NCBI GenBank assembly: GCA_026936335.1
Contig: JAPMXV010000025.1
Location: 124,001 to 188,000 of the forward strand
Direction: 5' to 3'
From: Mantamonas sphyraenae STR306
Lineage: Eukaryota; Protista; CRuMs
DNA length: 64,000 bases
Positions 25,394-51,713 of this stretch are shown piece by piece. The notes below the pieces were generated by a model. That model made no database searches and was not told where the DNA came from. It saw only the letters and a list, made by a program, of their open reading frames with translations. The translations under genes were made by a program, and so were the position numbers. The stretch's first letter is position 1, and every line of letters begins with the position of its first letter.

Positions 25394-28300
25394 ATGAGCA
25401 CAACACAAGAAGTGGACTGGAAGACACTGCTGGCGAGTGGCGATGTGGAACGCATTGGGGTGGCATTGGCAGAGGCAGGAGAGGTGGGTTTGCGGGAGAG
25501 TCGAGAGGGAAAATTTGGTTGACGTGTGGGTGGAGAGGATGGTTGAGGAGTGAGGAAGGAGTGAATAGAGGCGATTGGGATTGGGGGAAGTGGGTGGGTG
25601 GGTGGGTGCGGGGGGTGATGGCTGACGCAGGTGGTGCAGGAATTGAACCTGGGAGGGAAGAGTCTTGGGGACGAACATGTGGCAGCCCTGGCAAAGGCAT
25701 TGGGAAGGAACAGCAGCTTGAAGAGGCTGTACCTCAACAGCAACAGCGTTGGAGCAGAAGGAGCAGCAGCACTGGCGCAGGCACTAACTGAGAACAGCAG
25801 CTTGCAGATACTGAGCCTCGACAGCAACAGCATCGGCGACAAAGGAGCAGCAGCACTGGCGCAAGCACTGAGTGAGAACAGCAGCTTGCAGAGACTGGAC
25901 CTCTACAACAACAGCATCGGCGCAGGAGGAGCAGCATCACTGGCGCAGGGACTGAGTGAGAACAGCAGCTTGCAGAGACTGAACCTCCGAAACAACAGCA
26001 TCGGAGCAGAAGGAGCAGCAGCACTGGCGCAGGCATTGAGTGAGAAAAGCAGCTTGCAGACACTGTTCCTCGACAACAACAGCATCAGGGCAGAAGGAGC
26101 AGCAGCACTGGCGCAGGCACTGAGTGAGAATGGCAGCTTGCAGGCACTGTACCTCAACAACAACAGCATCGGGGACAAAGGAGCAGCAGCACTGGCGCAG
26201 GCACTGAGTAAGAACGGCAGCTTGCAGACACTGGACCTCAGCAACAACGGCATCGGAGCAGAAGGAGCAGCAGCACTGGCCGCAGCACTGCAATCCAACC
26301 ACACCTGCTGGTACATGCCTGGTGTGTACGATGATGCAGTCAAGCAGCGTCTTTCTCGCAACAGGGAGCACGCTGATGCGTTCCTCGCCGCCGCCCGCTC
26401 TGCCGACACCGATGCCATGCAGGAGCAGCTGGATTGGGGTGTTCACATCGACACATGGCCTGACAATGCCAACACAGCCCTCACCATTGCAGTCAACAGC
26501 AACGACGTTGAACTGTGCGCATGGCTGATCGAGCGTGGTGCGAATCCACTCACTCGCCCGTTTGGCTACAATCCCAATGCGCTGGAGCTGGCCCCAAAAA
26601 AAGGCAACACGGCCATTCTGGAGCTGCTCTCTGCAGCAATCAACCCTGTTGACCGATCCTGGCCAGCGTACGCCACAGCAACAGCCAATGTGGAGCTTGT
26701 GACTGAGCTGGATGCCATGCTGACAGCACTGTCATCATCATCGTCTGGACACACGAGCGTGGCGGATGTTGTGTCTGTGCTGAACGACAGCGCAAAGACG
26801 ACACCAATGCGCGAGGCATCGTCTGTGCAGGAACACCTGGAGACTGTGATCGCAGACACTGAGGTGGCATCGACACACCATGCTGTGCTGGACACGGTGA
26901 AGGAGAGTGTGGACCAGGAGAACGCACGTGCACGCACACTCTTGGCTGCAGCTGCTCCACACGCTGCACAGGCACAGCAAACACTGTGGACAGCAGAGCA
27001 GGAAGAAGTGGAGAGGCTGGTGGCGACACACAAGCAAGCGGCGAGACAGCGACAGGCAGGGACGACGATGGAAGCCAAGACGAGTGCACGTGAAGTGGAA
27101 CTGCAGACGAGTGTGGAGCTGGTGGGAGTGTGTGCACAACGGGCAGAGAAGAGGATGGTAGTGCGGAGGGAGGTGTATGGAGCAGCAGGAGAGGTGTGGG
27201 AGGGAGTGTGGAAGGAAGCAGCAGCAGGTGAACCATCGTCGTCACCTGGAGGATGGATTGGAGAACGGGCAGAGGCACAACGGGAGCATGTGTTGACTCA
27301 GGCTGGGGTCACAAGGGAGGAGGGAAGACGGTATGCAGCTGGGCTGGAGCAACTGGAGGCCAACACAGGAGAGCTGGAGGCACGGAAGGAGGCACTGGGT
27401 GCAGAGGAGGAGAAGGAGCGGATGGCGAAGGAGACGCATGTGACAGAGATGGGACGAGAGATTGAAGAGCTGGAGAACAGACTGGCACAGCTGCGCAGGG
27501 ACAAGGCAGCTGAGGAGGTGGCATTGCGTGAGCTGCCTGCTGTGTACAGACAAGAACGCAGGCAGATCGAAGCAACACTGAAACAATGTGAGAACTGGTG
27601 CACACAGCTGCGCATGCTGTGTGAGCGTCAGGAGGGACTGACGCATGCGCTGGAGCAGCTGGCAGAGGCGAGCAAGGAGCATCTGGAAGAAACCGCTGAA
27701 GCAGTGGACCACACAGAGCAACAGCTGCAGACACACCACAGAGCAGAACAGACGATGACCAAAGAGGCAGCCGAGTTGGCATGTGGGTCGCTGGCAGGGG
27801 AACTTCAACGTCTGGAACGGTCGAAAGGACCGAAGCAGAAGCGTGTGCAGCAGGCAGAGGCAGACATGCTGCGGTACCTGGAGGAGGAGCTGACCGAAGA
27901 GTACAACCGAGCACGGGAGGAGCGGGAGCAGGCAGCAGCGGGTGTGAAGCAGGTGGAGGCGATGCAGACCGAGCGGCTGGAAACGCTGAATGCAGCCGAG
28001 GCACTGCTGGGCAAGGAGGCATCGAGTCTGGCGGCGGTGCTTGCAGGGGAGGACAGACGAGGTTCATCGAACAACTGGACACCGCCTGGGTCGCCACTGG
28101 GATCAGAAGTGGAGAGTAGCGGAGACGAGTCGCTGGAGATCCCGTGGTCGGATCTGTCGAAAGGGGAACTGCTGGGAGAGGGCGGGTTTGCGTTTGTGTA
28201 CAAGGGGATGCTGCGTGGAAGCACGCCAGTAGCCATCAAGATGATGAAGGTGCAGGTGATGGATGCTGAACACGCAGCAGCATTCAACCACGAGGTGCGG

Positions 28301-29500
28301 ACGATGAAGGGACTGAAGCACAGGAACATGATCACACTGCACGGAGTGTGCGTGGAACCGGAGCATGTGTGCATGGTGACGGAACTGTGTGAGCTTGGGT
28401 CGCTGCACAGGCTGCTGCACGAGAGAGGCGAGGGTGCGGAAGGGCTGTCTGAGGAGGCCAAGGTGCAGATTGCACGAGATGTGGCAGACGGAATGGCGTA
28501 CCTGCACGGATACAAACCACCGATCATGCACAGGGACCTGAAGCCAGAGAATGTGCTGCTGGACAGGCGTGGCGTGGCACGGATCAGCGACTTTGGGCTG
28601 AGCCGGGTAAAGGAGCACACCAAGACGAAAACCAAGTCAGGCGCCGGATCATGGCAGTACATGGCACCTGAGCTGTTGTTGGATGATGATGACACGGACA
28701 GCGACGAGGAGGAGGATGCAGGGGCGTCGTCCTCGAGCGTTTCCATGCGGACGTTTGACGAAAAGGTGGATGTGTTTGCGTTTGGGATGCTGTTGTGGGA
28801 GATGATGCATGAAGTGCAGCCGTACAGCGGAAAGGGAGGCTTCTCGATGGCCAAGTTGATCTACCGATGGGGGAAGAAGCCGGACAAGCGAGAGAAGATC
28901 GACACGAGCGTGTGTCCGGGATGGGCGACAAAGCTGATTGAGCAGTGCTGGGCGACGGATCCATCGCAACGGCCTCCGTTCACACAGATTGTGGCGACGC
29001 TGGACACGGTGGAGGTGATGAAGAAGGAGGAGATGCACTCGCAGGTGGAGATTGTGAGCATCCTGCACGAGATGCAGGGGACACAGGCACAGATCCTGGA
29101 CGCGATGCAGTTTGACCACGAGGCATGGCAGGCACAGGTGGCTGCACTGGATCCCAGGGCACAGGAGGAGATTGTCACTGCGCTGCGAGAGGTACAAAGC
29201 GACACGGAATCACTAAAGAGGAAGAGTGGCCAACAGAGCAAGGCGATCCGGTTCCTGGGAGAGCAGGTACCACAGTTGCGAGCGTGGCTGACAGAGGTGC
29301 AGACACGGGCAGAGGCACAAGGGCTGAACGCAGCAGATGTGGACATTGTGCGTGCGCAACTGGCTGCCATGGAGCAGGATGTGATGGAAGTGAAAGAGCG
29401 GGTGAGCAGTCAAGGAGCAGCGATGGTTGGAGTGCAAGCGAAGCTGGTGACGGTGGAGATTGGGATGGGGGAGAGTGGAGAGGATGATGAAGGAGTGTGA
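25394..29500 (+). CDS. LRR (RI-like, 28 aa)-ankyrin-coiled coil-TKL Ser/Thr kinase, copy 1; exons 25394-25483 and 25631-29500
   Basis: Exon 1 encodes MSTTQEVDWKTLLASGDVERIGVALAEAGE; donor GAG|GTGGGT, acceptor GCTGACGCAG|GTG, phase 0. Ankyrin motif NTALTIAV..N..ELCAWLIERGANP. Kinase motifs GEGGFA, VAIK, HRDLKPEN, DFG, YMAPE, DVFAFG. No signal peptide or TM segment. Confidence 0.92.
25631..26305 (+). repeat. 84-bp LRR tandem repeat, 7 units plus an N-terminal repeat
   Basis: LQxLxLxxNSIGxxGAAALAxALxxNxS period counted in the translation. Confidence 0.95.
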
Positions 29501-29894
29501 AGCCATGAAGGAAGGAGTCGGGTGTAGAGGACCATGTCTGACACGATGTGGAACGAGTGAACGAGTGTACGCACAAGGACTGGGTGATTGCAGGGAGGAC
29601 GCGGGGACCACAACCCCCGAGCAGGTGCAACGGAAGCATGTTGAACGAGAACTGGAGGCAGCAGCAATTGATTCTACCCAACATGGAAGAAACACGAGCA
29701 AACAAGGCAGCGTGTCTCTTCAACACATCCATACCAACCTCTTTGCGGACACCACCAACCACTCAACACAACTCCTCAACGACTGGGAACGGGGGTCTCT
29801 CCATTCGACTCTCACGTCATCACAAATCCCACACACACCAACCCCCAATCCTTGCCAGTCTTGTGTACCATCCAATCATCCCCTCATCCCCTCA

Positions 29895-31773
29895 TCACCT
29901 CCCTTGCGCATCCAAACCAAACGTCACCGGCGACGCCAACGTAACCACGCCATGGCGCATAAACGTACCATCGCGCAGGTCCAAGGCGCCCAGCATCTTT
30001 ACAGAGCCCAGAACCTCCCACGTGCCACTGAGCAGCGTCAATGTACCCACTTCCATGGATCCATGGACACGCAGAGTACCGCCCTGGCCGATGTGTACGG
30101 CATCGAAGCGAGCGCCAGTGTTGTGGACGCGCACTTCGCCACCCTGGGCCACGACGAGGTCGTCCAGGACGGCGTTGCTGAGCCACGTCACTGTGGACGA
30201 CGCCACACGCAGACGCAGACGCGACGTCTGTCCCTCCACATGCCATGCACCCACCGTCTGGAGCGGGTCCTGTGCCGACGGGTTGCCCCGCAGTGCACCG
30301 TGCTGCATGACTGTCATCTTGCTGTTCATCGTAGCGACACCATCCAGTGTCACGTTGGCTCCTGCCATCACACGCAGCTCGCATGCACCCGCGGTGCCGT
30401 TGACCGAGCCGTACAGCGAGGCCTCGCCGTAGAAGGACACGGTGGCGTTGCTGTCACACACCAGGTTGTGCACAGCCATGGAGCCAAAGGCATGCACATG
30501 GCTGCTCACACGGGCCTGGGACAGCGTGTGCATCGAGCCACCGAGATCGGCGCCTGTCAGCGTCGTCACACCGTTTCCACGCAGCCATGCGTTGGATGCC
30601 ATGTCCAGCACACCCGTCACCTGCACGTCGGTGTTCACTTGAAGCACACCACCCGCAGGCACGCGTGCATTCAGCACCTGTGTGCTCACACCGACGCTCA
30701 ACACGCCGTTGTTGCTTGTCAGGATGTTCACCACACGCAGCTGCGTCGTGTTTCCGCTCACTCCACCGCCTTCCGACAGTGTCACTGTGTTCATCCACAG
30801 TTGCGGGTCCTGTGCAACACCAGTGAACGCACCCTGCACCACACTGCCTGTGCCGTGCACGTGTGTGTCGCCTGCGAGAGCTGCGCCACGCACGATTTCC
30901 AGCACGCTTCCTGACAGCACGGTGACGTTGCCCCAGACAAGCGCACGGTCCACGCGTGCCACTGTGGCCTGCAAAAGCACCACCGAGGCATTTGCGGGAA
31001 CCAGCACACTGTCTGTGGCGTTGGGCACACGTTCGCCATCCCAGTTGGCGCTGACGTTCCAGTCGCCGCCGGCTGCGCCCACAAAGGTCAGCGTGGGCAC
31101 AAACGGCGCCACGGTGACGTTGAGCACTGCCTGGCGCGAGTAGGCTGGTCCAGCGCCGTGGTTGCCCAGGTCGTAGACACTGACGACGAGGGAATCGACA
31201 CCCGAGGACAGGCCAGGGACGCTTGCGTAGCGCAGGGTGGCCAGCTGGGCGTTGATGGAGCCCAAAGTGTCCACCACATCGATCTGCAGCTTGTCTGGAT
31301 GCGACACCGTCGACAGGCGTCCATGGGTGGCACTGATGACCAAACGCATGTTGCCATCGACCTGTGCGGCATCCACATCCGTCACAGAGATGCCTGCCAC
31401 GAGCACACTGTCCAAATAGTCCACAGTGAGCTCTGTGGGCATGCCAACAATGTGCACGGGGTCGTTCACGGCGGTGACGTTGACAGCGAGCACAAACACG
31501 GCCTGTGTGGCAGGGCCACCGGTGAAGCCGTTGTCGTTCACCACCACTGTCACGGTGTCGCCACCCACGTGATGCACAGGCGCATGGTACACGAGTGTTG
31601 TCAGCAACGCGTTGATCTGCGTCAGCGTGCCATTGTTCACCACCACGGATCCGTTGCCCGCGGCACCGGCTGCCAGCTCCACCGTGCCTAGCGTGGCACT
31701 CACGTTGAGGGTGAGCACGCCAGCCGCGGCATCGGGGTCTGCCACGCGCATAAAGGGCACGTGGAAGCTGCTG
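29895..31773 (-). pseudogene. 3' fragment (~625 codons) of the giant gene, lacking that gene's 5' end
   Basis: Near-identical to 52105-53983; the frame is intact but the gene's 5' portion is absent. Confidence 0.85.
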
Positions 31774-32300
31774 CCCTGGGCGTGGGTGAACCAGATGCCC
31801 TTGATGGAGAACAGGACGACAACACGTACGTCACACCCGAGGGAGAGATTGTACAGCGGTTCGACAAGAAGCGCACCGAGGTGCCCAAGTTTGTGTTTAT
31901 CCCAGACAAGACGCAGCCGCGGACCAACTGGCTGAACAGCATCACGGACAACAAATGCGGCCAGAGTCTGATCCTGGGCTCGACCATGGGCGCAGGGATC
32001 GGTCTGTCGATTGGGTTTGTGGGTGGCTTCCTTGCCGCACTGTTCTCTGGCCTTCCACGCTCAGAGATCCCTCGGTACACGGTGAAACGGGCGCTGCAGA
32101 GCGGCGGCTTCTTCACGTTTCTGCTGGCGACTGCGTTTGGCCTGCGCTGTGACACTCTGCCACACAACACAGCCACGATCTATTCTCTGTACAACGGCGT
32201 CGGGGGTGGCGTTGTGTCACGTCATGATGTACACACCAGTGTGTCGATTGTGACTTTGGAGGAGGAGGAGGAGGAGGGGGAGGGGGAGGCGACGATGTGA
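31761..32300 (+). pseudogene. Romo1/Mgr2-like (Tim17 superfamily) membrane protein ORF, apparently 5'-truncated
   Basis: KC...LG..MGAGIGL..G..GG.LAA...G......T.K..LQSGGFF.F.......LRC resembles the Romo1/Mgr2 pattern (C..K.MGF.MG..VG...QSGGTFGTFMAIG.GIRC). No upstream ATG in this copy; the first in-frame Met lies inside the domain. Confidence 0.7.
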
Positions 32301-32740: not shown

Positions 32741-32757
32741 GAACTGGTTGATCGATC

Positions 32758-35700
32758 ATGAGCACAACACAAGAAGTGGACTGGAAGACACTGCTGGCGA
32801 GTGGCGATGTGGAACGCATTGGGGTGGCATTGGCAGAGGCAGGAGAGGTGGGTTTGCGGGAGAGACGAGAGGGAAAAATTGGTTGACGTGTGGGTGGAGA
32901 GGATGGTTGAGGAGTGAGGAAGGAGTGAATGGGGGCGATTGGGATTGGGTGGAAGTGGGTGGGTGGGTGGATGCGGGGGGTGATGGCTGACGCAGGTGGT
33001 GCAGGAATTGAAACTCAGCGGGAAGAGTCTTAGGGGCGAACGTGTGGCAGCCCTGGCAAAGGCATTGGGATGGAACAGCAGCTTGAAGAAACTGTACCTC
33101 AGGAGCAACAGCATCGGGGCAGGAGGAGCAGCATCACTGGCGCAGGCATTGAGTGAGAATGGCAGCTTGCAGATACTAAACCTCGACAACAACAGCATCG
33201 GGGACAAAGGAGCAGCAGCACTGGCGCACGCACTGAGTGAGAACAGCAGCTTGCAGAGACTGTACCTCAGCTTCAACAGCATCGGAGCAGAAGGAGCAGC
33301 AGCACTGGCACAGGCACTGAGTGCGAACAGCAGTTTGCAGAGACTGGACCTCAACAGAAACAGCATCGGGGCAGAAGGAGCAGCAGCACTGGCGCACGCA
33401 CTGAGTGAGAACAGCAGCTTGCAGACACTGGACCTCAGCAACAACCGCATCGGGGACAAAGGAGCAGCAGCACTGGCGCACGCACTGAGTGAGAACAGCA
33501 GCTTGCAGAGACTGTACCTCAGCTTCAACAGCATCGGAGCAGAAGGAGCAGCAGCACTGGCACAGGCACTGAGTGCGAACAGCAGTTTGCAGAGACTGGA
33601 CCTCAACAGAAACAGCATCGGGGCAGAAGGAGCAGCAGCATTGGCGCACGCACTGAGTGCGAACAGCACTTTGCAGAGACTGGACCTTGACAACAACAGC
33701 ATCGGGGACGATGGAGCAGCAGCACTGGCCGCAGCACTGGAGTCCAACCACACCTGCTGGTACATGCCTGGTGTACACGATGATGCAGTCAAGCAGAGTC
33801 TCTCTCGCAACAAGGAGCACGCTGATGCGTTCCTCGCCGCCGCCCGCTCTGCCGACACCGATGCCATGCAGGAGCAGCTGGAATGGGGTGTTCACATCGA
33901 CACATGGCCTGACAGTGGGAACACAGCCCTCACCATTGCCGTCAACAGCAACGACATTGAACTGTGCGCGTGGCTGATCGGACGTGGTGCGAATCCACTC
34001 ACTCGACCTGATGGCTACAATCCCAATGCCCTGCAGCTGGCCCAGAAAAACGGCAACAAGGCCATCCTGGAGCTGTTCTCCGCAGCAATCAATCCTGTTG
34101 ACCCATCCTGGCCAGCATACGCCACAGCAACAGCCAATGTGGAGCTTGTGACTGAGCTGGATGCCATGCTGACAGCACTGTCATCACCATCGTCTGGACA
34201 CACAAGCGTAGCGGATGTTGTGTCTGTGCTGAACGACAGCGCAAAGACGACACCGATGCGCGAGGCATCGTCTGTGCTGGAACACCTGGAGACTGTGACC
34301 GCAGACACTCAGGTGGCATCGACACACCATGCTGTGCTGGACACGGTGAAGGAGAGTGTGAACCAGGAGAACGCCCGCGCACGCACACTCCTGGCTGCAG
34401 CTGCTCCACACGCTGCACAAGCACAGCAGACACTGTGGAAAGCAGAGCAGGAAGAAGTGGAGAGACTGGTGGCGACACACAAGCAAGCGGCGAGACAGCG
34501 ACAGGCAGGAACGACGATGGAAGCCAAGACAAGTGCACGTGAAGTGGAACTGCAGACGAGTGTGGAGCTGGTGGGAGCGTGTGCACAACGGGCAGAGAAG
34601 AGGATGGCAGTGCGGAGGGAGGTGTATGGAGCAGCAGGAGGGGTGTGGGAGGGAGTGTGGAAGGAAGCAGCAGCAGGAGAACCATCGTCGTCACCTGGAG
34701 GATGGATTGCAGAACGGGCAGAGGCACAACGGGAGCAGGTGTTGACTCAGGCTGGGGTCGCAAGGGAGGAGGGAAGACGGTATGCAGCTGGGCTGGAGCA
34801 ACTGGAGGCCAACACAGGAGAGCTGGAGGCACGGAAGGAGGCACTGGGTGCAGAGGAGGAGGAGGTGCGGATGGCGAAGGAGACGCATGTGACAGAGATG
34901 GAACGAGAGATTGGAGAGCTGGAGACCAGACTGGCACAGCTGCGCAGGGACAAGGCAGCCGCGGAGGAAGCATTGCGTGAGCTGCCTTCTGTGTACAGAC
35001 AAGAGCGCAAGCAGATCGAAGCAACACTGAATCAATGTGAGAACTGGCGCACACAGCTGCGGATGCTCTGTGAGCGTCAGGAGGGACTGACGCATGCGCT
35101 GGAGAAGCTGGCAGAGGCGAGCAAGGAGCATCTGGAAGAAACCGCTGAAGCAGTGGACCACACGGAGCAACAGCTGCAGACACACCACAGAGCAGAACAG
35201 ACGATGACCAAAGAGGCAGCCGAGTTGGCATGTGGGTCGCTGGCAGGGGAACTTCAACGTCTGGAACGGTCGAAAGGACCGAAGCAGAAGCGTGTGCAGC
35301 AGGCAGAGGCAGACATGCTGCGGTACCTGGAGGAGGAGCTGACCGAAGAGTACAACCGAGCACGGGAGGAGCGGGAGCAGGCAGCAGCGGGTGTGAAGCA
35401 GGTGGAGGCGATGCAGACAGTGCGGCTGGAAACGCTGAATGCAGCCGAGGCACTGCTGGGCAAGGAGGCATCGAGTCTGGCGGCGGTGCTTGCAGGGGAG
35501 GACAGACGAGGGTCATCGAACAACTGGACACCGCCTGGGTCGCCACTGGGATCAGAAGTGGAGAGTAGCGGAGACGAGTCGCTGGAGATCCCGTGGTCGG
35601 ATCTGTCGAAAGGGGAACTGCTGGGAGAGGGCGGATTTGCGTTTGTGTACAAGGGGATGCTGCGTGGAAGCACGCCAGTAGCCATCAAGATGATGAAGGT

Positions 35701-36946
35701 GCAGGTGATGGATTCTGAACACGCAGCAGCATTCAACCACGAGGTGCGGACGATGAAGGGACTGAAGCACAGGAACATGATCACACTGCACGGAGTGTGC
35801 GTGGAACCGGAGCATGTGTGCATGGTGACGGAACTGTGTGAGCTTGGGTCGCTGCACAGGCTGCTGCACGAGAGGGGCGAGAGTGCGGAAGGGCTGTCTG
35901 AGGAGGCCAAGGTGCAGATTGCACGGGATGTGGCAGACGGAATGGCATACCTGCACGGATACAAACCACCGATCATGCACAGGGACCTGAAGCCAGAGAA
36001 TGTGCTGCTGGACAGGCGTGGCGTGGCACGGATCAGCGACTTTGGGCTGAGCCGGGTAAAGGAGCACACCAAGACGAAAACCAAGTCAGGGGCCGGCTCA
36101 TGGCAGTACATGGCACCTGAGCTGCTGTTGGATGATGATGACACGGACAGCGACGAGGAGGAGGATGCAGGAGCATCCCCGAGCGTTTCCATGCGGACGT
36201 TTGACGAAAAGGTGGATGTGTTTGCGTTTGGGATGCTGCTGTGGGAGATGATGCATGAAGTGCAGCCGTACAGCGGCAAGAAGAACTATGGCCACAGCAA
36301 GCACATAGCCAAGCTGATCCAAAAACCAGACAAGCGAGAGAAGATCGACACGAGCGTGTGTCCGGGATGGGCGACAAAGCTGATTGAGCAGTGCTGGGCA
36401 ACGGATCCATCGCAACGGCCTCCATTCACACAGATTGTGGCGACGCTGGACACGGTGGAGGTGATGAAGAAGGAAGAGATGCACTCGCAGGTGGAGATTG
36501 TGAGCATCCTGCACGAGATGCAGGGGACACAGGCACAGATCCTGGACGCGATGCAGTTTGACCACGAGGCATGGCAGGCACAGGTGGCTGCACTGGACCC
36601 CAGGGCACAGGAGGAGATTGTCACTGCGCTGCGAGCGGTACAAAGCGACACGGAATCACTAAAGAGGAGGAGTGGCCAACAGAGCAAGGCGATCCGGTTC
36701 CTGGGAGAGCAGGTACCGCAGTTGCGGACATGGCTGACAGAGGTGCAGACACGAGCAGAGGCACAAGGGCTGAACGCAGCCGATGTGGACATTGTGCGTG
36801 CGCAACTGGCTGCCATGGAGCAGGATGTGATGGAAGTGAAAGAGCGGGTGAGCAGTCAAGGAGCAGCGATGGTGGGAGTGCAAGCGAAGCTGGTGACGGT
36901 GGAGATTGGGATGGGTGAGAGCGGAGAGGATGATGAAGGAGTGTGA
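32758..36946 (+). CDS. LRR-ankyrin-coiled coil-TKL kinase, copy 2; exons 32758-32847 and 32996-36946
   Basis: As copy 1, with 8 LRR units and a divergent segment after helix F. Confidence 0.92.
32996..33754 (+). repeat. 84-bp LRR tandem repeat, 8 units plus an N-terminal repeat
   Basis: Counted in the translation; includes an internal duplication (33195-33388 = 33447-33640). Confidence 0.95.
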
Positions 36947-39255: not shown

Positions 39256-39782
39256 CCCTGGGCGTGGGTGAACCAGATGCCTTTGATGGGGAACAGGACG
39301 ACAACACGTACGTCACACCCGAGGGAGAGATTGTACAGCGGTTCGACAAGAAGCGCACCGAGGTGCCCAAGTTTGTGTTTATCCCAGACAAGACGCAGCC
39401 GCGGACCAACTGGCTGAACAGCATCACGGACAACAAATGCGGCCAGAGTCTGATCCTGGGCTCGACCATGGGCGCAGGGATCGGTCTGTCGATTGGGTTT
39501 GTGGGTGGCTTCCTTGCCGCACTGTTCTCTGGCCTTCCACGCTCAGAGATCCCTCGGTACACGGTGAAACGGGCGCTGCAGAGCGGCGGCTTCTTCACGT
39601 TTCTGCTGGCGACTGCGTTTGGCCTGCGCTGTGACACTCTGCCACACAACACAGCCACGATCTATTCTCTGTACAACGGCGTCGGGGGTGGCGTTGTGTC
39701 ACGTCATGATGTACACACCAGTGTGTCGATTGTGACTTTGGAGGAGGAGGAGGAGGAGGGGGAGGGGGAGGCGACGATGTGA
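39243..39782 (+). pseudogene. Romo1/Mgr2-like ORF, copy 2
   Basis: Near-identical to 31761-32300; the frame stays open upstream to 38640 through antisense giant-gene sequence. Confidence 0.7.
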
Positions 39783-40219: not shown

Positions 40220-43200
40220 ATGAGCACAACACAACAAGTGGACTGGAAGACACTGCTGGCGAGTGGCGATGTGGAACGCATTGGAGTGGCATTGGCAGAG
40301 GCAGGAGAGGTGGGTTTGCGGGAGAGACGAGAGGGAAAAATTGGTTGACGTGTGGGTGGAGAGGATGGGTGAGGAGTGAGGAAGGAGTGAATGGGGGCGA
40401 TTGGGATTGGGGGCAGTGGGTGGGTGGGTGGATGAAGGGGGTGATGGCTGACGCAGGTGGTGCAGGATTTGAACCTGGGAGGGGAGAGTCTTGGGGACAA
40501 ACATGTGGCAGCCCTGGCAAAGGCATTGGGAAGGAACAGCAGCTTGCAGGGACTGTACCTCCACAGCAACAGCGTTGGAGCAAAAGGAGCAGCAGCATTG
40601 GCGCAGGCACTGGGAATGAACAGCAGCTTGCAGAACCTGAACATCAACAGCAACAGCATCGGGGACAAAGGAGCAGCAGCACTGGCGCAAGCACTGAGTG
40701 AGAACGGCAGTTTGCAGAGACTGGACCTCTACAACAACAGCATCGGGGCAGCAGGAGCAGCAGCACTGGGGCAGGCACTGAGTGGGAACAACAGCTTGCA
40801 GAGGCTGGACCTCAGCAGCAACAGTATCGGTGACAAAGGAGCAGCAGCCCTGGCGAAGGCACTGGGTGAGAACAACGGCTTGCTGGCACTGGACCTCCGC
40901 AACAACAGCATGGGGGCAGGAGGAGCAGCAGCACTGGCGCAGGTACTAAGTGAGAATGGCAACTTGCAGTCGTTGTACCTTGACAACAACAGCATCGGGG
41001 CAGAAGGAGCAGCAGCATTGGCGCACGCACTGAGTGCGAACAGCAGCTTGCAGAGACTGGACCTCAACAGCAACAGCATCGGGGACAAAGGAGCAGCAGC
41101 TCTGGCACAGGGACTGAGTGAGAACAGCAGCCTGCAGACACTGGACCTCAGCAACAACAGCATCGGAGCAGCAGGAGCAGCAGCACTGGCCGCAGTACTG
41201 GAATCCAACCACACCTGCTGGTACATGTCTGGTGTAGGCGATGATGCAGTCAAGCAGTTTCTCTCGCGCAACAAGGAGCACGCAGATGCGTTCCTCGCCG
41301 CCGCCCGCTCTGCCGACACCGCTGCCATGCAGGAGCAGCTGGATTGGGGTGTTCACGTCGATGCCTGGCCTGACGTCGAGAACACAGCCGTCACCGTTGC
41401 AGCCAACAACAACGACATTGAGCTGTGCGCATGGCTGATCGAGCGTGGTGCAAATCCACTCACTCGCCCATATGGCTACAAACCCAATGCCTTGGAGCTG
41501 GCCCAGAAAAACGGCAACACGGCCATCCTGGAGCTGCTCTCTGCAGCAATCAATCCTGTTGACCCATCCTGGCCAGCATACGCCACAGCAACAGCCAATG
41601 TGGAGCTTGTGACTGAGCTGGATGCCATGCTGACAGCACTGTCATCACCATCGTCTGGACACACAAGCGTAGCGGATGTTGTGTCTGTGCTGAACGACAG
41701 CGCAAAGACGACACCGATGCGCGAGGCATCGTCTGTGCAGGAACACCTGGAGACAGTGCTTGCAGACACTGAGGTGGCATCGACACACCATGCTGTGCTG
41801 GACACGGTGAAGGAAAGTGTGGACCAGGAAAACGCACGCGCACGCACACTCTTGGCTGCAGCTGCTCCACATGCTGCACAGGCACAGCAGACACGGTGGA
41901 CAGCAGAGCAGGAAGATGTGGAGAGACTGGTGGCGACACACAAGCAAGCGGCGAGACAGCGACGGGCAGGAACGACGATTGAAGCCAAGACGAGTGCACG
42001 TGAAGTGGAACTGCAGACGAGTGTGGAGCTGGTGGGAGCGTGTGCACAACGGGCAGAGAAGAGGATGGCAGTGCGGAGGGAGGTGTATGGAGCAGCAGGA
42101 GAGGAGTGGGAGGGAGTGTGGAAGGAAGCAGCGGCAGGAGAACCATCGTCGTCACCTGGAGGATGGATTGCAGAACGGGCAGAGGCACAACGGGAGCATG
42201 TGTTGGCACAGGCTGGGGTCACAAGGGAGGAGGGAAGACGGTATGCAGCTGGGCTGGAGCAACTGGAGGCCAACACAGGAGAGCTGGTGGCACGGAAGGA
42301 GGCACTGGGTGCAGAGGAGGAGGAGGTGCGGATGGCGAAGGAGATGCGTGTGATGGAGATGGAACGAGAGATTGAAGAGCTGGAGACCAGACTGGCACAG
42401 CTGCGCAGGGATAAGGCAGCTGAGGAGGTGGCATTGCGTGAGCTGCCTGCTGTGTACAGACAAGAGCGCAAGCAGATCGAAGCAACACTGAAACATAGTA
42501 ATTGGTGGCACACACAGCTGTGCATGCTGTGTGTGCGTCAGGAGGGACTGACGCATGCGCTGGAGAAGCTGGCAGAGGCGAGCAAGGAGCATCTGGAAGA
42601 AACCGCTGAAGCAGTGGACCACACGGAGCAACAGCTGCAGACACACCACAGAGCAGAACTGACGATGACCAAAGAGGCAGCCGAGTTGGCATGTGGGTCG
42701 CTGGCAGGGGAACTTCACCGTCTGGAACGGTCGAAAGGACCGAAGCAGACGCGTGTGCAGCAGGCAGAGGCAGACATGCTGCGGTACCTGGAGGAGGAGC
42801 TGACCGAAGAGTACAACCGAGCACGGGAGGAGCGGGAGCAGGCAGCAGCGGGTGTGAAGCAGGTGGAGGCGATGCAGACAGTGCGGCTGGAAACGCTGAA
42901 TGCAGCCGAGGCACTGCTGGGCAAGGAGGCATCGAGTCTGGCGGCGGTGCTTGCAGGGGAGGACAGACGAGGGTCATCGAACAACTGGACACCGCCTGGG
43001 TCGCCACTGGGATCAGAAGTGGAGAGTAGCGGAGACGAGTCGCTGGAGATCCCGTGGTCGGATCTGTCGAAAGGGGAACTGCTGGGAGAGGGCGGGTTTG
43101 CGTTTGTGTACAAGGGGATGCTGCGTGGAAGCACGCCAGTAGCCATCAAGATGATGAAGGTGCAGGTGATGGATGCTGAACACGCAGCAGCATTCAACCA

Positions 43201-44410
43201 CGAGGTGCGGACGATGAAGGGACTGAAGCACAGGAACATGATCACACTGCACGGAGTGTGCGTGGAACCGGAGCATGTGTGCATGGTGACGGAACTGTGT
43301 GAGCTTGGGTCGCTGCACAAGCTGCTGCACGAGAGGGGCGAGGGTGCGGAAGGGCTGTCTGAGGAGGCCAAGGTGCAGATTGCACGAGATGTGGCAGACG
43401 GAATGGCGTACCTGCACGGATACAAACCACCGATCATGCACAGGGACCTGAAGCCAGAGAATGTGCTGCTGGACAGGCGTGGCGTGGCACGGATCAGCGA
43501 CTTTGGGCTGAGCCGGGTAAAGGAGCACACCAAGACGAAAACCAAGTCAGGCGCCGGATCATGGCAATACATGGCACCTGAGCTGTTGTTGGATGATGAT
43601 GACACGGACAGCGACGAGGAGGAGGATGCAGGGGCGTCGTCCTCGAGCGTTTCCATGCGGACGTTTGACGAAAAGGTGGATGTGTTTGCGTTTGGGATGC
43701 TGTTGTGGGAGATGATGCATGAAGTGCAGCCGTACAGCGGAAAGGGAGGCTTCTCGATGGCCAAGTTGATCTCCCGATGGGGGAAGAAGCCGGACAAGCG
43801 AGAGAAGATCGACACGAGCGTGTGTCCGGGATGGGCAACAAAGCTGATTGAGCAGTGCTGGGCGACGGATCCATCGCAACGGCCTCCGTTCACACAGATT
43901 GTGGCGACGCTGGACACGGTGGAGGTGATGAAGAAGGAGGAGATGCACTCGCAGGTGGAGATTGTGAGCATCCTGCACGAGATGCAGGGGACACAGGCAC
44001 AGATTCTGGACGCGATGCAGTTTGACCACGAGGCATGGCAGGCACAGGTGGCTGCACTGGACCCCAGGGCACAGGAGGAGATTGTCACTGCGCTGCGAGC
44101 GGTACAAAGCGACACGGAATCACTAAAGAGGCAGAGTGGCCAACAGAGCAAGGCGATCCGGTTCCTGGGAGAGCAGGTACCACAGTTGCGGACATGGATG
44201 ACAGAGGTGCAGACACGAGCAGAGGCACAAGGGCTGAACGCAGCCGATGTGGACATTGTGCGTGCGCAACTGGCTGCCATGGAGCAGGATGTGATGAAAG
44301 TGAAAGAGCGGGTGAGCAGTCAAGGAGCAGCGATGGTGGGAGTGCAAGCGAAGCTGGTGACGGTGGAGATTGGGATGGGGGAGAGCGGAGAGGATGATGA
44401 AGGAGTGTGA
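40220..44410 (+). CDS. LRR-ankyrin-coiled coil-TKL kinase, copy 3; exons 40220-40309 and 40457-44410
   Basis: As copy 1, with 8 LRR units. Confidence 0.92.
40457..41215 (+). repeat. 84-bp LRR tandem repeat, 8 units plus an N-terminal repeat
   Basis: Counted in the translation. Confidence 0.95.
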
Positions 44411-44840: not shown

Positions 44841-46719
44841 TCACCTCCCTTGCGCATCCAAACCAAACGTCACCGGCGACGCCAACGTAACCACGCCATG
44901 GCGCATAAACGTACCATCGCGCAGGTCCAAGGCGCCCAGCATCTTTACAGAGCCCAGAACCTCCCACGTGCCACTGAGCAGCGTCAATGTACCCACTTCC
45001 ATGGATCCATGGACACGCAGAGTACCGCCCTGGCCGATGTGTACGGCATCGAAGCGAGCGCCAGTGTTGTGGACGCGCACTTCGCCACCCTGGGCCACGA
45101 CGAGGTCGTCCAGGACGGCGTTGCTGAGCCACGTCACTGTGGACGACGCCACACGCAGACGCAGACGCGACGTCTGTCCCTCCACATGCCATGCACCCAC
45201 CGTCTGGAGCGGGTCCTGTGCCGACGGGTTGCCCCGCAGTGCACCGTGCTGCATGACTGTCATCTTGCTGTTCATCGTAGCGACACCATCCAGTGTCACG
45301 TTGGCTCCTGCCATCACACGCAGCTCGCATGCACCCGCGGTGCCGTTGACCGAGCCGTACAGCGAGGCCTCGCCGTAGAAGGACACGGTGGCGTTGCTGT
45401 CACACACCAGGTTGTGCACAGCCATGGAGCCAAAGGCATGCACATGGCTGCTCACACGGGCCTGGGACAGCGTGTGCATCGAGCCACCGAGATCGGCGCC
45501 TGTCAGCGTCGTCACACCGTTTCCACGCAGCCATGCGTTGGATGCCATGTCCAGCACACCCGTCACCTGCACGTCGGTGTTCACTTGAAGCACACCACCC
45601 GCAGGCACGCGTGCATTCAGCACCTGTGTGCTCACACCGACGCTCAACACGCCGTTGTTGCTTGTCAGGATGTTCACCACACGCAGCTGCGTCGTGTTTC
45701 CGCTCACTCCACCGCCGTCCGACAGTGTCACTGTGTTCATCCACAGTTGCGGGTCCTGCGCAACACCAATGAACGCACCCTGCACCACACTGCCTGTGCC
45801 GTGCACGTGTGTGTCGCCTGCGAGAGCTGCGCCACGCACGATCTCCAGCACGCTTCCTGACAGCACGGTTACGTTGCCCCAGACGAGCGCACGGTCCACG
45901 CGTGCCACTGTGGCCTGCGAAAGCACCACCGAGGCATTCGAGGGAACCAGCACACTGTCTGTGGCGTTGGGCACACGCCCGGCATCCCAGTTGGCGCTGA
46001 CGTTCCAGTCGCCGCCGGCTGCGCCCACAAAGGTCAGCGTGGGCACAAACGGCGCCACGGTGACGTTGAGCACTGCCTGGCGCGAGTAGGCCGGTCCAGC
46101 GCCGTGGTTGCCCAGGTCGTAGACACTCACCACGAGGGGATCGACACCCGAGGACAGACCAGGGACGCTTGCGTAGCGCAGGGTGGCCAGCTGGGCGTTG
46201 ATGGAGCCGAGAGTGCCCACCACATCGATCTGCAGCTTGTCTGGATGCGACACCGTCGACAGGCGTCCATGGGTGGCACTGATGACCAAACGCATGTTGC
46301 CATCGACCTGTGCGGCATCCACATCCGTCACAGAGATGCCTGCCACGTGCACACTGTCCAAATAGTCCACAGTGAGCTCTGTGGGCATGCCAACAATGTG
46401 CACGGGGTCGTTCACGGCGGTGACGTTGACAGTGAGCACAAACACGGCCTGTGTGGCAGGGCCACCGGTGAAGCCGTTGTGGTTCACCACCACTGTCACG
46501 GTGTCGCCACCCACGTGATGCACAGGCGCATGGTACACGAGTGTTGTCAGCAACGCGTTGATCTGCGTCAGCGTGCCGTTGTTCACCACCACGGATCCGT
46601 TGCCCGCGGCACCGGCTGCCAGCTCCACCGTGCCCAGCGTGGCACTCACGTTGAGGGTGAGCACGCCAGCCGCGGCATCGGGGTCTGCCACGCGCATAAA
46701 GGGCACGTGGAAGCTGCTG
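44841..46719 (-). pseudogene. 3' fragment of the giant gene, copy 3
   Basis: Near-identical to 52105-53983. Confidence 0.85.
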
Positions 46720-47240
46720 CCCTCGGCGTGGGTGAACCAGGTGCCCTTGATGGAGAACAGGACGACAACACGTACGTCACACCCGAGGGAGAGATTGTAC
46801 AGCGGTTCGACAAGAAGCGCACCGAGGTGCCCAAGTTTGTGTTTATCCCAGACAAGACGCAGCCGCGGACCAACTGGCTGAACAGCATCACGGACAACAA
46901 ATGCGGCCAGAGTCTGATCCTGGGCTCGACCATGGGCGCAGGGATCGGTCTGTCGATTGGGTTTGTGGGTGGCTTCCTTGCCGCACTGTTCTCTGGCCTT
47001 CCACGCTCAGAGATCCCTCGGTACACGGTGAAACGGGCGCTGCAGAGCGGCGGCTTCTTCACGTTTCTGCTGGCGACTGCGTTTGGCCTGCGCTGTGACA
47101 CTCTGCCACACAACACAGCCACGATCTATTCTCTGTACAACGGCGTCGGGGGTGGCGTTGTGTCACGTCATGATGTACACACCAGTGTGTCGATTGTGAC
47201 TTTGGAGGAGGAGGGGGAGGAGGGGGAGGCGACGATGTGA
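46707..47240 (+). pseudogene. Romo1/Mgr2-like ORF, copy 3
   Basis: Near-identical to 31761-32300 with a shorter GAG run; the frame is open upstream to 46104. Confidence 0.7.
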
Positions 47241-47689
47241 TGATGATCAGGCGGGTGGTGGAGGGGGGTGCATGGGTGTGTTGGGTGCACACACGGTGGG
47301 AATGGGTGGAGTGGTGGGGGAAGGGTGGGATGGTGGGAGGACGGGGAGGATTCGGGTGGGAGAGGAGGAAGGGGTGGGGAAGGAGGGAGAGGGGACGAAT
47401 GAATGGATGCTTGGGAATATGGTTGCGAGGTGGGTGGGGGCAGATTGGAGGGGGGGGGGTGGTTGGAGAGAGGTGGGGAGGTGGATGCGTGGAGGGGACC
47501 ACCGGAACTTGGAAAGGAGACAAGGTTTGTTTTGGAGGGTGTGTGTGGGAACGGTGGTGGTGGTGGCGATGGATGGGTGGGGTGGAGTGAGGTGGGGAAG
47601 AGCGGGGGAGGGGTGGAAGGGGAAAGAGGAAAAGAAGGGGGGACATCGGAGCGGGAGCTGACACGTGGGACAGAACTGGTTGATCGATC

Positions 47690-50600
47690 ATGAGCACAAC
47701 ACGAAAAGTGGATTGGGAGGCACTGCTGGAGAGCGGCGATGTGGAACGCATTGGGGTGGCATTGGCAGAGGCAGGAAAGGTGGGTTTGCGGGAGAGACGA
47801 GAGGGAAAAATTGGTTGACGTGTGGGTGGAGAGGATGGTTGAGGATTGAGGAAGGAGTGAATGGGGGCGATTGGGATTGGGTGGAAGTGGGTGGGTGGGT
47901 GGATGCGGGGGGTGATGGCTGACGCAGGTGGTGCAGGAATTGAACCTGGGAGGGAAGAGTCTTGGGGACGAACGTGTGGCAGCCCTGGCAAAGGCATTGG
48001 GAAGGAACAGCAGCTTGAAGAGGCTGTACCTCCACAGCAACAGCGTTGGAGCAGAAGGAGCAGAAGCACTGGCGCAGGGACTGATTAAGAACAGCAGCTT
48101 GCAGACACTGTTCCTCAACAGCAACAGCATCGGCGACAAAGGAGCAGCAGCACTGGCGCAGGTACTGAGTGAGAATGGCAACTTGCAGTCGCTGTTCCTT
48201 GACTACAACAGCATCGGCGACAAAGGAGCAGCAGCACTGGCGCAGGGACTGAGTGAAAATGGCAACTTGCAGGCACTGTACCTCAGCAACAACAGCATCG
48301 GAGCAGAAGGAGCAGCAGCACTGGCGCAGGCACTGTGTGAGAACAGCAGCTTGCAGAGACTGGACCTTGACAAGAACGGCATCGGAGCAGATGGAGCAGC
48401 AGCACTGGCGCACGCACTGAGTGAGAACAGCAGCTTGCAGGGACTGTACCTTGACAACAACAGCATCGGAGCAGAAGGAGTCGCAGCACTGGCCGCAGCA
48501 CTGGAATCCAACCACACCTGCTGGTACATGCCTGGTGTAGACGATGATGCAGTCAAGCAGCGTCTCTCTCGCAACAAGGAGCACGCAGATGCGTTCCTCG
48601 CCGCCACCCGCTCTGCCGACACCGATGCCATGCAGGAGCAGCTGGATTGGGGTGTTCACGTCGATGCCTGGCCTGACAGACATAACACAGCCCTTACCTT
48701 TGCTGTGAACGACAACGACGTTGAACTGTGTGCATGGCTGATCGAGCGTGGTGCGAATCCACTCACTCGCCCAAATGGCACCAAACCCAATGCCCTGCAG
48801 CTGGCCCAGAAAAAAGTCAACACGGCCATCCTGGACCTGCTCTCCGCAGCAATCGATCCTGTTGACCCATCCTGGCCAGCATACGCCACAGCAACAGCCA
48901 ATGTGGAGCTTGTGACTGAGCTGGATGCCATGCTGACAGCACTGTCATCATCATCGTCTGGACACACGAGCGTGGCGGATGTTGTGTCTGTGCTGAACGA
49001 CAGCGCAAAGACGACACCAATGCGCGAGGCATCGTCTGTGCAGGAACACCTGGAGACTGTGATCGCAGACACTGAGGTGGCATCGACACACCATGCTGTG
49101 CTGGACACGGTGAAGGAGAGTGTGGACGAGGAGAACGCACGTGCACGCACACTCCTGGCTGCAGCTGCTCCACACGCTGCACAAGCACAGCAGACACGGT
49201 GGACAGCAGAACAGGAAGAAGTGGAGAGGCTGGTGGCGACACACAAGCAAGCGGCGAGACAGCGAAAGGCAGGGACGACGATTGAAGCCAAGACGAGTGC
49301 ACGGGAAGTGGAACTGCAGACGAGTGTGGAGCTGGTGGGAGCGTGTGCACAACGGGCAGAGAAGAGGATGGCAATGCGGAGGGAGGTGTATGGAGCAGCA
49401 GGAGAGGTGTGGGAGGGAGTGTGGAAGGAAGCAGCAGCAGGAGAACCATCGTCGTCACCTGGAGGATGGATTGCAGAACGGGCAGAGGCACAACGGGAGC
49501 ATGTGTTGGCACAGGCTGGGGTCACACGGGAGGAGGGAAGACGGTATGCAGCTGGGCTGGAGCAACTGGAGGCCAACACAGGAGAGCTGGAGGCACGGAA
49601 GGAGGCACTGGGTGCAGAGGAGGAGGAGGTGCGGATGGCGAAGGAGGCGCGTGTGACAGAGATGGAACGAGAGATTGAAGAGCTGGAGACCAGACTGGCA
49701 CAGCTGCGCAGGGACAAGGCTGCTGAGGAGGAGGCATTGCGTGAGCTGCCTGCTGTGTACAGACAAGAGCGCAAGCAGATCGAAGCAACACTGAAACAAT
49801 GTGAGAACTGGCGCACACAGCTGCGGATGCTGTGTGAGCGTCAGGAGGGACTCACACATGCGCTGGAGCAGCTGGCAGAGGCGAGCAAGGAGCATCTGGA
49901 AGAAACCGCTGAAGCAGTGGGCCACACAGAGCAACAGCTGCAGACACAACACAGAGCAGAACAGACGATGACCAAAGAGGCAGCCGAGTTGGCATGTGGG
50001 TCGCTGGCAGGGGAACTTCAACGTCTGGAACGGTCGAAAGGACCGAAGCAGAAGCGTGTGCAGCAGGCAGAGGCAGACATGCTGCGGTACCTGGAGGAGG
50101 AGCTGACCGAAGAGTACAACCGAGCACGGGAGGAGCGGGAGCAGGCAGCAGCGGGTGTGAAGCAGGTGGAGGCGATGCAGACCGAGCGGCTGGAAACGCT
50201 GAATGCAGCCGAGGCACTGCTGGGCAAGGAGGCATCGAGTCTGGCGGCGGTGCTTGCAGGGGAGGACAGACGAGGGTCATCGAACAACTGGACACCGCCT
50301 GGGTCGCCACTGGGATCAGAGGTGGAGAGTAGCGGAGACGAGTCGCTGGAGATCCCGTGGTCGGATCTGTCGAAAGGGGAACTGCTGGGAGAGGGCGGGT
50401 TTGCGTTTGTGTACAAGGGGATGCTGCGTGGAAGCACGCCAGTAGCCATCAAGATGATGAAGTTACAGGTGATGGATTCTGAACACGCAGCAGCATTCAA
50501 CCACGAGGTGCGGACGATGAAGGGACTGAAGCACAGGAACATGATCACACTGCACGGAGTGTGCGTGGAACCGGAGCATGTGTGCATGGTGACGGAACTG

Positions 50601-51713
50601 TGTGAGCTTGGGTCGCTGCACAGGCTGCTGCACGAGAGGGGCGAGGGTGCGGAAGGGCTGTCTGAGGAGGCCAAGGTGCAGATAGCACGAGATGTGGCAG
50701 ACGGGATGGCATACCTGCACGGATACAAACCACCGATCATGCACAGGGACCTGAAGCCAGAGAATGTGCTGCTGGACAGGCGTGGCGTGGCACGGATCAG
50801 CGACTTTGGGCTGAGCCGGGTAAAGGAGCACACCAAGACGAAAACCAAGTCAGGGGCCGGCTCATGGCAGTACATGGCCCCTGAGCTGCTGTTGGATGAT
50901 GATGACACGGACAGCGACGAGGAGGAGGATGCAGGGGCGTCGTCCTCGAGCGTTTCCATGCGGACGTTTGACGAAAAGGTGGATGTGTTTGCGTTTGGGA
51001 TGCTGTTGTGGGAGATGATGCATGAAGTGCAGCCGTACAGCGGAAAGGCAGGCTTCTCGATGGCCAAGTTGATCTCCCGATGGGGGAAGAAGCCGGACAA
51101 GCGAGAGAAGATCGACACGAGCGTGTGTCCGGGATGGGCGACAAAGCTGATTGAGCAGTGCTGGGCGACGGATCCATCGCAACGGCCTCCGTTCACACAG
51201 ATTGTGGCGACGCTGGACACGGTGGAGGTGATGAAGAAGGAAGAGATGCACTCGCAGGTGGAGATTGTGAGCATCCTGCACGAGATGCAAGGGACACAGG
51301 CACAGATCCTGGACGCGATGCAGTTTGACCACGAGGCATGGCAGGCACAGGTGGCTGCACTGGACCCGAGGGCGCAGGAGGAGATTGTCACTGCGCTGAA
51401 GCAGGTACAAAGCGACACGGAATCACTAAAGAGGAGGAGTGGCCAACAGAGCAAGGCGATCCGGTTCCTGGAAGAGCAGGTACCACAGTTGCGGACATGG
51501 CTGACAGAGGTGCAGACACGAGCAGAGGCACAAGGGCTGAACGCAGCAGATGTGGACATTGTGCGTGCGCAACTGGCTGCCATGGAGCAGGATGTGATGG
51601 AAGTGAAAGAGCGGGTGAGCAGTCAAGGAGCAGCGATGGTGGGAGTGCAAGCGAAGCTGGTGACGGTGGAGATTGGGATGGGGGAGAGTGGAGAGGATGA
51701 TGAAGGAGTGTGA
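47690..51713 (+). CDS. LRR-ankyrin-coiled coil-TKL kinase, copy 4; exons 47690-47779 and 47928-51713
   Basis: As copy 1, with 6 LRR units. Exon 1 (MSTTRKVDWEALLESGD...) keeps its frame and length despite substitutions, which supports the exon call. Confidence 0.92.
47928..48518 (+). repeat. 84-bp LRR tandem repeat, 6 units plus an N-terminal repeat
   Basis: Counted in the translation. ORF lengths of 1261, 1289 and 1317 aa differ in steps of 28. Confidence 0.95.

Follow-up and report, generated by a model that had tools for sequence, protein, structure and literature searches.

Tandem LRR-ankyrin-kinase genes with a recombining, positively selected repeat surface in Mantamonas sphyraenae: candidate sensors of a protist defence system

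Four LRR-ankyrin-kinase genes in a tandem array

We analysed 64,000 nucleotides of DNA from Mantamonas sphyraenae, a marine CRuMs flagellate that branches near the base of Amorphea, and found in this stretch (hereafter the window) a tandem array of plus-strand genes whose products join leucine-rich repeats (LRRs), ankyrin repeats, long helices and a Raf-like kinase domain. In these genes, a variable repeat surface that is generated by recombination is coupled to a conserved, intact kinase. The window is C25:124001-188000, where C25 is the contig that holds it (JAPMXV010000025.1) and other C numbers denote other contigs of the same assembly; positions without a prefix are those of the window. 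The FALCON assembly of the diploid strain SRT-306 has been described as 25.06 Mb in 78 contigs with a GC content of 59% and 112x PacBio coverage (PMC10492846), and the sequence used here amounts to 25,061,354 bases over 78 contigs.

A preliminary description of the locus, drawn from its letters, had claimed four intact paralogues, and four stop-free open reading frames (ORFs) are indeed present on the plus strand, at 25631-29500, 32996-36946, 40457-44410 and 47928-51713 (copies 1 to 4; 1289, 1316, 1317 and 1261 amino acids). Upstream of each ORF we found a conserved 30-codon exon that begins with ATG (starts at 25394, 32758, 40220 and 47690) and is separated from the ORF by an in-frame GT..AG intron of 147-148 nt in all four copies; the splice between exons 1 and 2 is predicted from this conserved signal and not from a read joint. 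Copy 1 thus has its exon 1 at 25394-25483 and a predicted intron of 147 nt at 25484-25630, while copies 2, 3 and 4 span 32758-36946 (exon 1 32758-32847, intron 32848-32995), 40220-44410 (40220-40309, 40310-40456) and 47690-51713 (47690-47779, 47780-47927), respectively.

The encoded proteins share one domain order, in which an N-terminal capping repeat is followed by the LRR units, a C-cap, ankyrin repeats, ~460 amino acids of long helices, a kinase and a helical tail of 160 amino acids, and Pfam recognises LRR_6, Ank and PK_Tyr_Ser-Thr. In copy 1, these parts lie at 25631-25708 (N-cap), 25709-26296 (seven 84-bp units of the ribonuclease-inhibitor, RI, type), 26297-26641 (C-cap and ankyrin repeats), 26660-28046 (the long, coiled-coil-like helices), 28133-29005 (kinase) and 29006-29500 (tail). 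The LRR region comprises eight units in copy 2 (33074-33745, including a recent internal duplication of 252 bp), eight in copy 3 (40535-41206) and six in copy 4 (48006-48509). These are the unit numbers given earlier: cutting the region into 28-residue units yields exactly 7, 8, 8 and 6 (n = 29), and Tandem Repeats Finder returns 84-bp arrays of 6.9, 8.2, 7.9 and 5.9 copies. In a structural model of the LRR (predicted local distance difference score 95), unit positions 6-8 fall on parallel beta-strands; its best solved fold match is the NOD2 LRR, with NLRP and ribonuclease-inhibitor repeats matching as well.

The kinase, which carries an acidic insert, has its Gly loop, VAIK lysine, alphaC glutamate, HRD, DFG and APE motifs in all four copies, and its best solved relatives are CTR1 (E 3e-52), MLK/ZAK and BRAF, with a fold Z of ~30. 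We class it as a Raf/MLK-like kinase of the tyrosine kinase-like (TKL) group, most closely resembling Raf/CTR1 and predicted to be catalytically intact. Between ankyrin repeats and kinase, the proteins consist of long helices throughout, without Roc-COR. A Pfam scan of the four genes found no NACHT, NB-ARC, Roc or COR domain, and the P-loop motif GxxxxGK[ST] occurs in none of the four copies, which bears out the earlier claim that these domains are missing. The proposed cytosolic location is likewise consistent with our data, as exon 1 is not hydrophobic and has no signal peptide, and exon 2 reaches a maximum 19-residue hydropathy of 1.1, with no transmembrane stretch predicted. In the public run X3, read depth was present on exon 1 and the coding region, and none was found across most of the intron or the intergenic stretch. 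This run, which also holds a Romo1 contig with 191 additional 5' letters, resembles the RNA run of the genome study, and its pattern suggests that the LRR-kinase family is transcribed, with signal that is not assignable to a copy and with no intron joint listed.

The array extends beyond the window: two further copies lie upstream at C25:107 and 115 kb, so that the tandem array described earlier is real, with four copies in the window and six, not four, on the contig. Its repeat unit of ~7.47 kb consists of a 5'-truncated Romo1/Mgr2 gene, the LRR-kinase gene and the final 1.9 kb of a large minus-strand gene. A Romo1 copy with an intact flank is found at the upstream end of the array (C25 ~105.8 kb, before the first of the six copies), and the large gene, which encodes SBBP beta-propeller repeats and was the donor of the 3' pieces, stands unbroken in the downstream flank (52105-63984, minus strand). 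Within the window, a co-duplicated 3' piece of this gene (~1.9 kb, 29895-31794, minus strand) meets a truncated Romo1/Mgr2 (31806-32300, plus strand) at a junction at 31777-31809. Equivalent junctions lie near 39260-39290 and 46725-46755 as well as once upstream of the window, and further truncated Romo1/Mgr2 copies at ~39288-39782 and ~46752-47240. All four internal junctions have one common breakpoint and different sequences. Because of this shared breakpoint, and because intact flanks occur only at the array's ends, the layout is that of one tandem duplication followed by unequal crossing-over. The array is now interrupted by a ~31-kb block of TIG/TRP-type genes. Downstream of their LRRs, which differ in content, the six copies are 2.8-5.3% apart, and the nearest neighbour of each copy switches along the gene, pointing to ongoing gene conversion.

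Positive selection and shuffling of the LRR units

We numbered the start of each LRR unit as N1-S-S-L4-x5-x6-L7-x8-L9-x10-x11-N12, in which sites 6, 8, 10 and 11 form the concave face. Nonsynonymous differences per site (pN) far exceeded synonymous ones (pS) at these four sites (0.42 versus 0.16; ratio 2.7, bootstrap over units 1.8-5.4), as compared to 0.03 versus 0.21 in the framework and 0.23 versus 0.23 at other exposed sites. A fixed-sites codon model fitted by maximum likelihood gave a concave dN/dS (omega) of 2.7-3.0, with twice the log-likelihood difference (2dlnL) from omega 1 amounting to 23-31 (two codon-frequency models, shared synonymous rate); the framework yielded 0.15 and other sites ~1.3-1.5. 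The possibility that dN/dS would be at or below 1 on this face was thus tested, and omega was found to exceed 1.

When the units were simulated forward in time with neutrally evolving concave sites, allowing for conversion between genes, replacement of units and biased codon use, the observed statistic of 2.05 was reached in 0 of 360 neutral runs (maximum 1.51); simulation at omega 3 reproduced it. An independent subfamily on C73, whose unit consensus differs, singled out the same four positions: omega was 7.6 (2dlnL 59), significance was confined to sites 6, 8, 10 and 11, and pN was 0.44 at these positions versus 0.06 at other exposed ones. These data show that the concave LRR sites are under positive selection. 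The earlier statement that variation concentrates at the concave x positions holds in so far as variation is clearly uneven; it overstated the concentration, since the four sites account for 36% of the inter-unit amino-acid differences within 14% of the positions, and positions 16/17, 24, 25, 27 and 28 vary between units as well. The helix GAAALA.AL had rightly been called highly similar down to its DNA (89% identity between units); at the four concave codons, identity falls to 63% for DNA and 26% for amino acids. The 29 units of the four genes carry 24 different concave tetrapeptides.

The units also recombine and duplicate in blocks. A test of the pairwise homoplasy index type rejected their clonal descent (0 of 5000 permutations), and identical units are found in different genes and at different positions, in line with the shuffling of 84-bp units that had been proposed. 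In copy 2, an internal duplication of three units left unit 3 identical to unit 6 and unit 4 only 2 nt different from unit 7; one upstream copy has a three-unit repeat of its own, and copy 3 shares identical units and an identical cap-ankyrin region with the upstream copy at C25:107 kb. Over the ten genes of this architecture that we found in the genome (see below), the number of units ranges from 4 to 19. Mean identity between units is 70% in amino acid and 82% in DNA, rising to 98-100% DNA identity in recently duplicated blocks; high internal conservation in fungal NLRs has been defined as >85% amino-acid identity over 100 amino acids, and our average of 70% was obtained by a metric other than that paper's exact one. 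The data show that unequal crossing-over and gene conversion, acting on three levels, produce new versions of the genes, namely at the level of the 84-bp units, the 7.47-kb gene units and whole output modules.

Two other sources of diversity were considered. We rejected mutagenesis by a diversity-generating retroelement, for the adenines of the helix GGA/GCA codons are almost invariant, every unit varies and no template repeat was evident, in an examination that included no search for a reverse transcriptase; the variable codons are mostly NNC. Somatic assembly of the kind known for lamprey variable lymphocyte receptors does not fit either, as every copy is a complete gene in the assembly.

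Variation continues past the LRR. Across ten paralogues, variability behind the LRR peaks at residues 230 and 233 on the cap strand and at 279, 280 and 311 on the ankyrin finger tips, and six finger-tip codons, picked after viewing the alignment, showed a pN of 0.40 versus a pS of 0.21. Variable ankyrin finger tips are known from the ankyrin repeats of fungal NLRs (PMC4986451), and the binding face probably extends from the LRR onto the ankyrins. The kinase, by comparison, is nearly frozen (pN 0.004, pS 0.055) outside a block of 16 codons that covers the alphaF-alphaG loop and alphaG (28832-28879 in copy 1), and the C-terminal tail is under the strongest purifying selection (pN/pS 0.17). The alphaG block occurs as two main types, and that of copy 2 (36278-36325) is wholly different from its neighbours and of the type found on C2 and C34. 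The near-invariant kinase core of the preliminary description is therefore correct outside this block and fails within it, where copy 2 has been swapped. In Raf kinases, alphaG forms the substrate-docking surface, and for this reason the output specificity of the kinase may also be exchanged.

A wider family and its candidate role in defence

At least 148 places in the genome match the cap-ankyrin piece, and many of these are clustered or near contig ends. Architectures were read at loci L001-L030, with most of the 148 matches lying outside that set. Ten genes have the full series of LRR-cap-ankyrin, helices, kinase and tail, and within the sequence covered, no stop interrupts any of the ten kinase-bearing copies examined. 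Other members depart from this plan: a gene on C58 has the front end, kinase and tail without the helices, three genes on C73 have a shorter kinase form, and an older relative on C43 (L019, C43:280772-285007) has LRR, ankyrin, helices and tail (40-47% identical) without the kinase, which was either inserted into or lost from this scaffold. A gene on C77 (L024) combines the same front end with a second LRR and a Roc-like P-loop GTPase, one on C76 (L029) combines it with a U-box, and further members (among L026, L028 and L030) end in a short helical tail that looks F-box-like by eye; as Pfam gave no F-box hit there even at E 0.1, this label stays one of visual resemblance. A gene on C9 (L011, C9:152309-156682) combines an Hsp70-like domain, a degenerate LRR and a distant ankyrin module with the same kinase and tail. 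Its kinase and tail are 93% identical in DNA to copy 1 and its cap-ankyrin region only 38% identical in protein, from which the gene appears to be a recent module swap, possibly an integrated decoy or a chaperone-based sensor. The earlier notion of a sensor-coiled-coil-kinase family was too narrow, because the sensor is common to a large family with other outputs. Elsewhere in the genome, NACHT-family matches above the Pfam cut-off occur at C73:155028, C44:221175, C49:460613 and C67:47975, with a profile that in controls also matched unrelated ATPases.

Homologue searches, which were limited and used exon 2 alone rather than the spliced protein, returned only LRR matches for the N-terminal 480 amino acids (coral NLRC3-like, Mortierella, Salpingoeca Roco and others) and generic kinases at up to 39% identity for kinase plus tail. 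When the cap-ankyrin-helical region was compared with 1.84 billion representatives, the best stretches were confined to the ankyrin repeats and the residues immediately behind them. In the Atlas, the helical region had no match, and the junction region matched generic ankyrin/LRR clusters. Within these searches, no relative of the helical region was found outside this genome and no database protein had the order LRR-ankyrin-helices-kinase-helices, in keeping with the earlier impression of an unrecognised architecture; in metagenomes, RI-type LRRs do occur fused to kinases in unrelated proteins (P0078, P0031, P0033). We found no paper on Mantamonas immunity or on these genes, and the genome paper mentions neither kinases nor leucine (PMC10492846). 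As judged from these searches, the full domain order appears new, while the kinase class and the principle of shuffled sensors are already known. The novelty is lower than had been implied, because LrrkA-type kinases as well as shuffled, selected repeat sensors (brown-algal ROCOs, fungal NLRs, Tetrahymena LRRs) have been published.

Several of these systems are instructive. Brown-algal LRR-ROC-COR proteins have shuffled LRRs under diversifying selection and are candidate immune receptors (PMC11378527); like the Mantamonas genes, they lie outside animals and land plants and have a putative immune role, but they use one exon per LRR, alternative splicing and a Roc-COR output, in contrast to a single LRR exon with 28-residue RI-type units followed by ankyrin repeats, helices and a Raf-like kinase. 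The HET-D/E/R-type NLRs of Podospora resemble the array in their concerted evolution within and between genes, variation in repeat number, about four selected sites per repeat and combinatorial effectors (PMC4986451). Fungal NLRs, however, have C-terminal WD, ANK or TPR repeats, no LRRs and a NACHT/NB-ARC core, whereas the Mantamonas proteins have an N-terminal LRR and ankyrin sensor, a C-terminal effector and no nucleotide-binding core. The LRR genes of Tetrahymena with 90-bp exons (PMC6564038) likewise form a lineage-specific protist family that evolves by unequal crossing-over, is in some cases joined to kinases and has been proposed to act in defence; they differ in having an exon per repeat, an association with retrotransposons, and another repeat and architecture. 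LRRK1/LRRK2 and other Roco kinases also combine LRR, ankyrin and TKL kinase in one cytosolic chain, but the array genes lack Roc-COR, have the LRR before the ankyrin repeats and turn over their repeats rapidly, although a Roc-like relative exists (the C77 gene). With animal NLRC3/NOD2-type proteins, expanded in corals, the likeness is limited to the 28-residue RI-like repeat (50-60% identical to coral NLRC3-like LRRs), the array genes having no NACHT. Shared domain types also link the array genes to LrrkA and LrrkB of Dictyostelium, which are cytosolic, ~1290 amino acids long and built of seven LRRs and a kinase without Roc-COR or transmembrane helix; LrrkA acts in bacterial killing, and the available text of PMC7003747 mentions no ankyrin repeats, tandem expansion or hypervariable LRR. 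No Dictyostelium protein appeared among the matches listed for the N-terminal 480 amino acids or for kinase plus tail. By architecture, the genes belong with LrrkA in a loosely defined class of cytosolic LRR kinases that have no Roc-COR.

Of the features that define STAND-type NLRs, the array genes have the repeat sensor with a diversifying binding face and lack the NACHT/NB-ARC core; the Roc plus COR tandem of ROCO/LRRK proteins is absent, as are the signal peptide and transmembrane helix of plant and oomycete LRR receptor-like kinases. Since the genes have neither NACHT/NB-ARC nor Roc-COR, the array is a member of neither family, even though it appears to work like fungal NLR repeats and brown-algal LRR-ROCOs.

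With moderate confidence, we favour the interpretation that the genes encode cytosolic sensor-kinases of a lineage-specific family for defence, i.e., for the recognition of non-self. A foreign protein, be it from a virus, an intracellular bacterium or an effector delivered by prey, would bind the LRR-ankyrin face in the cytosol, and binding would relieve autoinhibition or cluster chains through the coiled-coil-like helices. The Raf-like kinases might then form dimers and trans-phosphorylate in the manner of the Raf family, and would phosphorylate a substrate docked at alphaG; sensor and kinase would be coupled without an intervening nucleotide switch such as NACHT or Roc. Because the same sensor occurs elsewhere with a Roc-like GTPase, with a U-box or with a short helical tail, recognition could be routed to signalling or, possibly, to ubiquitination. 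More tentatively, and in our estimate with less than even odds, the family could constitute a large, NOD-independent intracellular immune repertoire, in which one LRR-ankyrin chassis (>100 genes) is combined with unit shuffling, interchangeable outputs (Raf-like kinase, Roc-like GTPase, U-box, short helical tail), exchange of alphaG between alleles and Hsp70-type decoys.

A number of findings weigh against the defence interpretation. When the concave class was given its own synonymous rate, omega was 1.8-3.0 and p varied from 0.21 to 0.008 depending on the model, because four codons hold few synonymous sites. The older units on C2 and C34 showed an omega of only 1.4, and in the array itself a non-concave position, site 17 on the loop after the strand, reached 2.7, with sites 25, 27 and 28 more weakly above 1. 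A single strain has been sequenced. The kinase is of the RD type, which sets it apart from many pattern-recognition kinases of plants; the structural model obtained for the helices is of low confidence, too uncertain for a fold match; and a search of the genome found no viral packaging ATPase, so that no antagonist was identified.

The variable face might instead read food. Kinases akin to LrrkA could sense molecules of phagocytosed prey and tune feeding, motility or phagosomal killing, with diversification tracking the prey. Mantamonas is kept in xenic culture with bacteria (PMC10492846), and LrrkA (1288 amino acids, cytosolic, seven LRRs, no Roc) ties folate sensing to intracellular killing, according to the available part of PMC7003747; the same text, however, describes one close look-alike, LrrkB, and no shuffled or hypervariable LRR. 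An omega of 3-8 with high copy turnover fits an arms race better, and the fact that this sensor also carries a U-box and other tails suggests that the bound target itself is acted upon; we regard prey sensing as unlikely. Endogenous polymorphic ligands, as in allorecognition between cells or surveillance of selfish elements, would resemble the fungal HET-D/E/R repeats, which share the concerted evolution and the four selected positions per repeat (PMC4986451). The array is moreover interrupted and flanked by large polymorphic genes resembling surface receptors, and the Hsp70-like domain that one gene combines with this kinase could act as a guard of host proteins. Yet no linked ligand gene that co-varies with the LRRs was identified. 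To our knowledge, cell fusion has not been described in Mantamonas, which also counts against such self/non-self recognition, and we assign it a low probability.

Relaxed constraint with concerted evolution would make the pattern one of neutral drift, its apparent selection arising from codon bias, recombination or hypermutation. Synonymous sites are indeed strongly biased to C-ending codons, recombination is present, and under one model the test weakens once the concave class has its own synonymous rate. This account is largely refuted already and very improbable, given that simulations with codon bias and conversion never reached the observed value, that the independent C73 subfamily singles out the same four positions while its other exposed ones are quiet, that near-invariant helix GGA/GCA codons exclude adenine-directed mutagenesis, and that the ten kinase-bearing copies are stop-free. 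Finally, the array could be an artefact in which haplotypes or erroneous versions of fewer loci were joined in tandem: the genome is diploid, no short-read-style contig spans a whole unit, and the depth comparison, made without a single-copy control, does not prove that six copies share one chromosome. Short-read depth per assembled copy was nonetheless even (21.5 and 27.4 for Romo1, equal to the 22.6 and 26.3 for the copy-2-specific LRR), Illumina depth on the gene body was above rather than below the assembly's prediction, and the array junction is covered in public-run contigs, one of which bridges it; over-assembly is hence unlikely. A diploid with six versions 2.8-5.3% apart and of different LRR content, four distinct junction sequences and intact-flank genes at the ends only, assembled from 112x PacBio data, does not conform to a single locus stitched in tandem, the possibility raised in the preliminary description, and we consider such an artefact extremely improbable.

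Little is known about how free-living protists detect viruses and intracellular bacteria. The locus offers an arms-race signature that has been measured on a defined surface, and it does so in a lineage whose divergence predates the split between animals, fungi and amoebozoans. The 92 LRR units of the ten genes, with 72 different concave faces, are defined baits for ligand finding. If the sensor directly activates the kinase, repeat-based cytosolic surveillance would need neither a STAND ATPase nor a Roc switch, which would support the view that NLR-like systems were invented several times, each time independently, out of the same parts; a large repertoire, if real, would mean that a free-living protist arrived at NLR-like innate immunity by a route of its own. 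The mechanism of diversification is already known from fungi, brown algae and ciliates, with the immune role unproven in the algal and ciliate cases too.

Neighbouring genes

The SBBP gene downstream of the array is an open frame of 3959 amino acids whose 3' end is 97% identical to a paralogue on C67. The truncated Romo1/Mgr2 copies are nearly identical to each other and in frame, and an ATG upstream at the junction may supply their start. At the 3' end of Romo1, a GGA-rich stretch of 35 bp (32255-32290) matches many places near contig ends and is probably a simple subtelomeric repeat. Within the interrupting block, the segment 6667-25156 contains two large TIG/Ephrin-receptor-like/TRP-like genes arranged tail to tail (9067-16086, plus strand; 16416-22760, minus strand). 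The inverted arms of this pair are 99.5% identical (6667-9209 with 22618-25156, and 13171-15425 with 16577-18830), with diverged parts in between, and a third relative of the TIG/TRP type lies at 605-6400 on the minus strand.

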